This document shows, one piece after another, positions 62,049-64,000 of a DNA stretch of 64,000 nucleotides. How positions within the stretch are numbered: the first letter of the stretch is position 1; every line of letters starts with the position of its first letter. The notes under the pieces were generated by a model. It saw only the letters and a program-made list of their open reading frames with translations. It was not told the DNA's origin and did no database searches. The position numbers and the translations under genes were made by a program. This stretch comes from Scyliorhinus canicula (taxonomy: Eukaryota): the NCBI RefSeq assembly GCF_902713615.1, contig NC_052161.1:120745574-120809573 (forward strand). Reading direction: 5' to 3'.

Positions 62049-62159
62049 CTTGGAATCCTTCCCCCGTTTTTGTTCCTTTGTTTTTAATACACTTGTTGAA
62101 CTATAGTATTACGGATTGTGCTCTGAACATAGCCCCAGTATTTTTGTGTTATTGTCATC

Positions 62160-62560
62160 AAAGAACAAAGAAAAGTACAGCACAGGAACAGGCCCTTCGG
62201 CCCTCCAAGCCTGCACCAACCATGCTGCCCGTCTAAACTAAAATCTTCTACACTTCCGGGGTTCGTATCCCTCTATTCCCATCCTATTTATGTATTTGTC
62301 AAGATGCCCCTTAAACGTTACTATCATCCCTGCTTCCACCACCTCCTCCATCAGCGAGTTTCAGGCACCCACTACCCTCTGTGTAAAAAACGTACCTCGT
62401 ACATCTCCTCTAAACCTTGCCCCTTGCACCTGAAACCTATACCCCCTAGTAATTGACCTCTCTACCCTGGGGAAAAAGCTCTGACTATCCACTCTGTCTA
62501 TGCCCCTCATAATTTTGTAGACCTCTATCAGGTTGCCCCATAACCTCCTTTGTTCCAGTG
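62160..62560 (-). mobile_element. CR1 3' end
   Basis: GTACAGCACAGGAACAGGCCCTTCGGCCC terminus, and FFTQRVVGA on the minus strand. Confidence 0.9.
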
Positions 62561-62677
62561 GGACAGAGCTGTAGGTAAACAGGTTCAGGTACCGATACAG
62601 TTTCAGGTTCTTTGTTGATAACTTCTATGTGGAGGATTACGATAAATAAGAACCAATGTGTAATTTTCTTTCTGCAG

Positions 62678-62886
62678 AGCGTTTCTGAGTTGGAGCCAAT
62701 GGAGGCAGGGTCGTTGCAGAACCCGAGAGTTGATTGAAAGGTTTTCCTTTGTCCGGCAGTGCCGAGTTCTGCTGAGCCTTTGGAAAATGCGTTTACTACA
62801 AAAACTGGAAGCTGACAGAAGATGCAGAGAGATATTGCATCAGCAAATTCAGAAGGCCATGACCCAGTGGCACACATATACAAGGA
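62678..62886 (+). CDS. C1orf167: C1orf167-like coding exon (gene continues beyond the window)
   Basis: ttctgcag acceptor and a|gtgagt donor. AFLSWSQWRQ...RVLLSLWKMRL...QKAMTQWHTY. Phase 2->1. Confidence 0.85.
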
Positions 62887-62904
62887 GTGAGTGTCAGTAT
62901 AGAA

Positions 62905-63990
62905 CAGTGTTTTTCAAACTTTTTTTCCGGGACCCATTTTTACAAACTGGCCAATGTTCGGGACCCACACCGGCCGACCTTCGGGACCCACACCGGCCGA
63001 CCTTCGGGACCCACACCGGCCGACCTTCGCGACCCACACCGACCAACCTTCGCGACCCTCCATTTTCTCTTACCTTGTTTGCTGCTGACAAAATGGAGGA
63101 ATTGCAATCGTGCCCAAAGCACGTGATGGCGACGTTCAGGGGCTGTGACCTGCTCACTACCTCCCTCAGGCAGGAAGATTACACAGAATGTTAAAAAGAA
63201 TATTCTATGCCTCCGATTGTGCAAATTTGCAGTCTTCAGCCTCAGCAGCCGGCTTTTATATTCAATAGAAATTTATTTTTTATAAATTGTAACAATGTTT
63301 TTGCACGGCACGTTTAATCAATGAGACCAAGCCCATGTCATTGTCAGATTCTTCCTGTTTCTTCTCTTCCTTTTTCTCTTCGTCAGCAACTGCTGCAGCA
63401 GCTGGGGCACTGCTACCAGCACCAACGTTGCAGATCAGACTATTGACGTCAATATTAGCCAATGCCTTGGCAAACAGACTAGGCCAGAAAGGCTCAATGG
63501 TCACACCAGCTGTTTTCATCAGGGCATTGGGTTTCTCTTCAGTTACAGTGCAGGATGAGCGTGCTGTAGATACAGGCGAGTTCCAACGTGGAGGCCATGC
63601 GCTGGATCTCTGCGGGTGGGTCTGATGATGCTAGTCGCCAGGGGGGGGGCTCGACCTTAGTTTCGTTCAGAAAAGGCGCGCACTTCCGAACCGGGCAGAG
63701 CGAGCAGCAGCCGGCTTTTAACTATGCCGGTTGCGAGCGGCCTTTTTACCATAAAAAAATGCGACCGCACTGCACGTGCGCAACTATTCATCGGTGCGCA
63801 TGTGCAAAACTCTTTTTACAATTATGTTGTAAAAAGGCCGCTCGCAGCCGGTGTAGTTAACAGCTGGCTGCTGCGCTTCTTGCGCACGGGTTTGCGCAAT
63901 CGGGAGCGCCGCGATGGACGGCTCCACGACCCTCTCGACACACGCCCACGACCCACCCGCAGGGCGCGCTCCCGACTTTGAAGATCACTA
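62905..63990. mobile_element. non-autonomous hAT-Charlie element
   Basis: TIRs CAGTGTTTTTCAAA / TTTGAAGATCACTA. 8-bp TSD GTATAGAA (62897-62904) / GTTTAGAA (63991-63998). Four internal 23-bp repeats at 62960-63058. Confidence 0.85.
63259..63704 (-). pseudogene. RPLP1: processed pseudogene of 60S acidic ribosomal protein P1
   Basis: Intronless [17 protein letters not shown] (ATG at 63598) ..[44 protein letters not shown], with frameshifts. AATAAA at 63277-63272. 16-bp TSD. Confidence 0.93.
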
Positions 63991-64000
63991 GTTTAGAAGG

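Follow-up and report, generated by a model that had tools for sequence, protein, structure and literature searches.

The question raised by this locus is whether a reverse-transcribed copy of a ribosomal protein mRNA, found inside a DNA transposon in the catshark Scyliorhinus canicula, is a single nested insertion or one member of a transposon family that carries and multiplies a host sequence. The locus lies at the right end of the window, i.e., of the whole 64-kb stretch of DNA that was analyzed, and consists of an RPLP1 retrocopy nested in a hAT-like element, which in turn follows a putative exon of a host gene (Table 1). According to the original prediction, an L1-made RPLP1 retrocopy had landed in a hAT MITE, and, if the composite had then transposed, a gene-carrying hAT family would have been created.

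Table 1. Coordinates of the features at the RPLP1/hAT locus (positions within the window; TSD, target-site duplication; TIR, terminal inverted repeat)
Feature	Position	Strand	Details
Putative host-gene exon	62678..62886	+	AG acceptor 62676-62677 after a polypyrimidine tract; GTGAGT donor at 62887
Left 8-bp hAT TSD	62897..62904	.	GTATAGAA; 7/8 match to 63991-63998
Left arm of non-autonomous hAT-like element	62905..63242	+	TIR 62905-62919, CAGTGTTTTTCAAAC
16-bp retroposition TSD, retrocopy 3′ side	63243..63258	.	CAGCAGCCGGCTTTTA; 100% identity, repeat finder
RPLP1 processed pseudogene	63259..63704	-	446 nt; colinear with shark RPLP1 proteins
Retrocopy 3′ UTR	63313-63259	-	55 nt; AATAAA 63277-63272
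Retrocopy broken CDS	63598-63314	-	Original TAA at 63316-63314
Retrocopy ATG	63598-63596	-	
Retrocopy 5′ UTR	63704-63599	-	106 nt
16-bp retroposition TSD, retrocopy 5′ side	63705..63720	.	CAGCAGCCGGCTTTTA; also outer part of left hairpin arm
Right arm of hAT-like element	63721..63990	+	TIR 63976-63990, reverse complement TAGTGATCTTCAAAG (63990-63976)
Right 8-bp hAT TSD	63991..63998	.	GTTTAGAA

The insert has the structure expected from the original prediction, with a 5′ UTR, a coding sequence, a 3′ UTR, and an AATAAA signal enclosed between two perfect 16-bp direct repeats. By our own arithmetic, 1.6 kb would contain about 3e-4 pairs of perfect 16-mers such as CAGCAGCCGGCTTTTA by chance. On the sense strand, the duplicated sequence begins with TAAAAG and corresponds to an A/T-rich site of the TTTT/A type. 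The retrocopy is intronless over the 109-aa RPLP1 coding sequence, whereas the parent genes, P0122 and P0121, span 7,233 and 7,668 bp, respectively, for the same 109 aa. When the retrocopy is read with X at the frame breaks for alignment, its coding sequence is seen to be broken by a deletion of ~14 nt after codon 17, which causes a frameshift, and by the loss of 1 nt within the C-terminal GFGLFD motif; 7 and 3 codons have also been lost in frame.

No poly(A) tail is present between the end of the 3′ UTR and the TSD: 13 nt separate AATAAA from the duplication, which adjoins the 3′ UTR, and the sole A run by the 3′ end of the retrocopy is the AAAA inside the TSD itself. Thus, a LINE-type origin is less textbook than had been claimed. 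The part of the predicted retroposition signature that stands is the long TSD at a TTTT/A-type site, while the tail is absent; it is this target-site pattern that points to L1 as the putative maker. At its other end (63677-63704, minus strand), the retrocopy reaches ~28 nt upstream of the pyrimidine start CCTTTTCT and includes CGGAAGTG. A pyrimidine tract is the usual start of ribosomal protein mRNAs, and CGGAAGTG is presumably an ETS/GABP-like site; the cargo may carry a putative minimal ribosomal protein promoter.

The two-ended unit that surrounds the retrocopy (62905-63990) is 1,086 bp long; subtraction of the insert and of one copy of the 16-bp TSD leaves 624 bp. It is bounded, as anticipated, by TIRs with an 8-bp TSD of its own. 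The CAGTG-type TIRs, CAGTGTTTTTCAAAC and TAGTGATCTTCAAAG, match at 11 of 15 nt, and the flanking octamers, GTATAGAA and GTTTAGAA, are identical at seven of eight positions, both having T at position 2 and A at position 7 in accordance with the hAT pattern nTnnnnAn. The CAGTG...CAAAC ends presumably resemble the MER1/Charlie termini. No transposase ORF was found within the element, which is thus non-autonomous. Since the window ends 10 nt past the right TIR, the right boundary (63990) is set by the TIR and the TSD at this locus.

The abundance of the element was followed in contigs from public sequencing runs of three organisms, at 85% likeness, with contig extent calibrated on record 14 of X14. 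Contig abundance steps up exactly at the start of the left arm, 62905, and the contig joint 62316->62905 reveals another copy of the element beginning at exactly the same nucleotide. The termini are multi-copy, with the terminal bins occurring in ~100 or more different contigs in each run and the terminal part of the right arm found in many contigs. The inner left arm (63107-63242) is a lower-copy segment, and many copies diverge after 63093. Within the left arm there is also a 23-bp tandem repeat, TTCGGGACCCACACCGGCCGACC, present 4.4 times at 62957-63058; it is far commoner in contigs than the inner arm, and the contig joints indicate that the number of its units differs among element copies. 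That the retrocopy landed in a hAT MITE, as predicted, is supported: the nested anatomy, both duplications, the intronless copy as against the intron-bearing parent, and the multi-copy termini are all present in the data.

A hairpin of 171 nt (63704-63874) occupies much of the right arm. Its two arms, 63704-63756 and 63822-63874, are 53 nt each and 85% complementary, and folding gave a dG of -68.4 kcal/mol with a z of -12.4. Because the 16-bp TSD constitutes the outermost stem, the retrocopy entered at the base of this hairpin. In contigs, the arm sequence is about 10-35 times commoner than the loop, and the hairpin may be a small palindromic element in its own right that lies nested within the hAT element. 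An Rfam match to mir-5014 was sub-threshold (26.9 bits vs. a gathering score of 101) and was read as a hairpin artifact. An inverted second insertion of RPLP1 was considered as the source of an opposite-strand joint, 63704->63891, but was discarded in favor of a simpler reading, namely, ordinary copies in which the right hairpin arm fits the reverse-complemented left arm better, plus a 17-nt difference. This reading is supported by the matching contig abundance of the bins 63675-63745 and 63888-63958.

The putative exon next to the element has one frame open over all 69 of its 69 codons and is single copy by the contigs; a Pfam search of it gave no family match. The left TIR begins 18 nt past the exon end, in agreement with the prediction, and an insertion at this distance from a splice donor could affect splicing of the host gene. 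In the contigs, DNA of the exon flank (62610-62893) occurs in single copy and gives way to repeated DNA in the bin that contains 62905. Record 32 of X9, a contig from the sister species (organism B), spans 62569-62926 at 96.6% identity and comprises the orthologous exon together with the first 22 nt of the hAT-like element. Thus, the insertion at this site predates the split of species A and B. Just upstream of the exon, positions 62113-62609 are occupied by a very high-copy interspersed repeat whose summed contig depth is, in each of the three organisms, the highest of the stretch compared with the contigs; the divergence of hundreds of contigs before 62159/62160 suggests that this is its 5′ boundary.

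The contigs also bear on whether the composite, and not only its carrier, is repeated. In another sample of the same species, X4, a contig aligned to 63608-63724 carries C63661, G63673, and A63679 and differs in this from the window locus. It covers 97 nt of the 5′ end of the retrocopy, the 16-nt TSD, and 4 nt of the right arm, so that the right junction is crossed by 20 nt. At the left junction, variant contigs of X1 and X9 read TTTT at 63267-63270, where the window locus has AGAA; they start at 63236 and 63232, respectively, i.e., 23-27 nt into the left arm. All of these same-species and sister-species crossings, 20-27 nt in length, fall below the 31-nt rule for calling a bridge. In organism C, record 14 of X14 aligns without gaps to 63193-63319 at 87% identity, comprising 66 nt of the left arm and 61 nt of the retrocopy; this contig could be an ortholog of the window locus and not a paralog. 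At 63267 in X1, the depth is 4.4 for the window locus and 220.7 for the other copies (summed depth, not copy number). Similarly, the depth of the arm bin 63178-63248 (264) is close to that of the retrocopy ends (210-225), and the outer arms rise to thousands, none of these values being copy numbers.

Matches that continue past both cDNA ends would not be found among independent retrocopies, and the contigs therefore favor a multi-copy composite, short of proof. It is on such junction-crossing contigs, now seen in three species, and on the size of the family that the favored reading of the composite as multi-copy in its entirety is based, and to this extent the predicted gene-carrying family gains support. 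A joint of an empty element, skipping the 462-bp insert, is absent from the 15 joints listed, though joints of depth 5-45 are among them; empty elements may lie among 235 further joints and 2,857 loose ends. Within the 64-kb window, BLASTN of both arms and of the retrocopy returned self matches only. The 90-aa ORF running across the right junction, used as the query of a protein word search, gave no candidates in a collection apparently devoid of non-coding catshark ORFs. Finally, tBLASTN of the RPLP1-like proteins with N- or C-terminal extensions, P0125, P0036, P0004, and P0019 against the element revealed no read-through into the shared flanks; the tail of P0019 alone matches the 3′ UTR of the retrocopy.

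The RPLP1 sequence has undergone a marked expansion in catsharks. By a protein search combined with a cluster look-up (P0001-P0059 and P0121-P0128), the RPLP1-like proteins annotated by NCBI number at least 28 for S. canicula and at least 15 for S. torazame, as compared with 1-3 for other sharks and rays. The corresponding loci are spread over many chromosomes in both species, and all four extra loci looked up are 330-bp, single-exon, intronless genes. In the alignment, each copy is 3-17 residues off the family consensus; most of these changes are private, and they include the conserved C-terminus. Judged from the alignment, such a pattern is that of neutral, star-like decay, and the intact intronless RPLP1-like genes in RefSeq are probably pseudogenes.

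Nearly all copies of both species have VVST, whereas the present parents have VVSS (S. canicula) and AVTT (S. torazame). A derived state, “HR”, is common to P0008, P0025, P0037, and P0044, which lie on three chromosomes, and A30V is found in four S. torazame copies. VVST and the common derived states are better explained by a past burst or copy-of-copy spread than by continuing retroposition from the parent. S5L and A13T were discarded as subfamily markers since both are CpG transitions (TCG>TTG and GCG>ACG) and hence recurrent.

Two of the annotated proteins deserve mention on their own account. In P0004, isoform X1 of the parent gene of S. torazame, an alternative N-terminal exon contains VFQTF, identical to the translated TIR at 62909-62923; this hints at an exonized intronic copy of the same transposon superfamily in a real RPLP1 gene, the five-residue match not being significant alone. 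P0125 of S. canicula (170 aa) has an N-terminal extension that begins with MDFSKAFDKIPNG and looks like a reverse-transcriptase motif, which suggests a chimeric annotation joining a LINE fragment to an RPLP1 retrocopy.

We infer that the composite hAT unit accounts for part of the RPLP1-like loci in Scyliorhinus. A stronger version, in which the dozens of intact 109-aa genes would derive chiefly from the hAT family with the RPLP1 retrocopy and some of them, given the ETS-like promoter element in the cargo, would be transcribed or translated, seems doubtful to us. If it were true, a ribosomal stalk protein gene would have been expanded in a vertebrate by a cut-and-paste transposon. Should the RPLP1-like genes be transposon cargo, and hence probably pseudogenes, they would inflate the gene-family counts of two catshark genomes.

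The history that we consider likely is that the nested RPLP1 retrocopy was amplified as cargo of the hAT element. In a catshark ancestor, a LINE enzyme would have copied a spliced RPLP1 transcript by reverse transcription into a TTTTA site at the hairpin base of a non-autonomous hAT element of ~624 bp, the insertion giving rise to the 16-bp duplication. The resulting composite of ~1.1 kb would have retained both hAT ends and could have been mobilized and multiplied by a hAT transposase acting in trans. One of its copies would have landed 18 nt into an intron, with the 8-bp duplication, before species A and B split, after which the RPLP1 cargo would have decayed neutrally as a pseudogene.

A simpler course of events would be a one-off nested insertion, made before or after the arrival of the MITE, with the other catshark RPLP1 copies being independent LINE retrocopies in unrelated flanks. 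Processed pseudogenes derive from ribosomal protein mRNAs more often than from any others, no second composite has been seen in full, the window holds no second copy, and the same-species crossings of the junctions are short, all of which counts in favor of this explanation. However, matches of 20-27 nt, and still more so of 66 nt, past the ends of the cDNA would be absent from an independent retrocopy, and such a copy is also unlikely to begin at the very same point, 28 nt ahead of the pyrimidine start. Moreover, the RPLP1-like copies do not track the sequences of the present-day parents. A one-off event is therefore regarded as unlikely.

Still less probable, in our estimation, is a composite that is multi-copy but owes its multiplication to segmental or tandem duplication or to travel as a passenger of a larger repeat. 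Local duplication does occur in the family, since P0012 is encoded identically at four places, three of them on one chromosome, and the pairs P0002/P0039 and P0038/P0040 are near-identical and lie on the same chromosome. Against duplication as the general mechanism, the repeated DNA begins exactly at the TIR next to a single-copy exon flank, the unit is flanked by a hAT-type 8-bp duplication, and the RPLP1-like loci are found on many different chromosomes; the spread would thus have proceeded by hAT transposition and not by duplication. As to mere chance, the imperfect TIRs (11/15) and outer TSD (7/8) might suggest that the direct repeats and termini reflect no transposon or retroposition event at all. 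This possibility is effectively refuted and carries almost no weight, given the low expectation for the perfect 16-mer pair, the insert being a complete cDNA, and the termini occurring in very many contig copies, with another starting at 62905.

Amplification of the retrocopy as hAT cargo, the reading preferred here, has several partial precedents, and a literature search found no description of this element in catsharks. To our knowledge, bat Helitrons are essentially the only vertebrate DNA transposons documented to have amplified retrocopies. In plants and fungi, housekeeping sequences have likewise been caught between transposon ends and have left tens to hundreds of dead copies, as exemplified by plant Pack-TYPE/Pack-MULE elements (PMC8903248) and by the histone H3 copies that hAT elements have amplified in Dothideomycete fungi (Dhillon et al. 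2019, PMC6710886). Those captures, however, occurred at the DNA level by transduplication, whereas the cargo here is a retrocopy with a TSD of its own, and the host is a vertebrate. The locus also resembles LINE-mediated ribosomal protein pseudogenes in being intronless, in extending from the 5′ UTR to the polyadenylation signal, in having a long TSD, and in its neutral decay. Unlike an ordinary LINE pseudogene, it has no poly(A), it begins ~28 nt ahead of the expected pyrimidine start, and its flanks are apparently common to other copies.

The closest parallel is provided by the Helitrons of vespertilionid bats, in which four retroposed mRNAs, including that of RPLP0 (HelibatN424), were propagated to 118 copies (Thomas et al. 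2014, PMC4224331); according to the authors, nothing of this kind had been reported before for a DNA transposon. In bats, as here, a retroposed mRNA coding for a ribosomal stalk protein came to lie, flanked by TSDs, inside a non-autonomous DNA transposon. The bat study presented empty-site exemplars and the flanks of individual copies, whereas the present case is built on one locus and contigs, with no poly(A) tail in the retrocopy. The carriers differ as well, the bat Helitron being a rolling-circle element and the shark one a cut-and-paste element of the hAT type with TIRs and an 8-bp TSD. If a cut-and-paste hAT element has indeed spread a retrocopy in sharks, this route of retrocopy amplification is more general, and the catshark case would be a cut-and-paste shark version of the phenomenon known from bat Helitrons.
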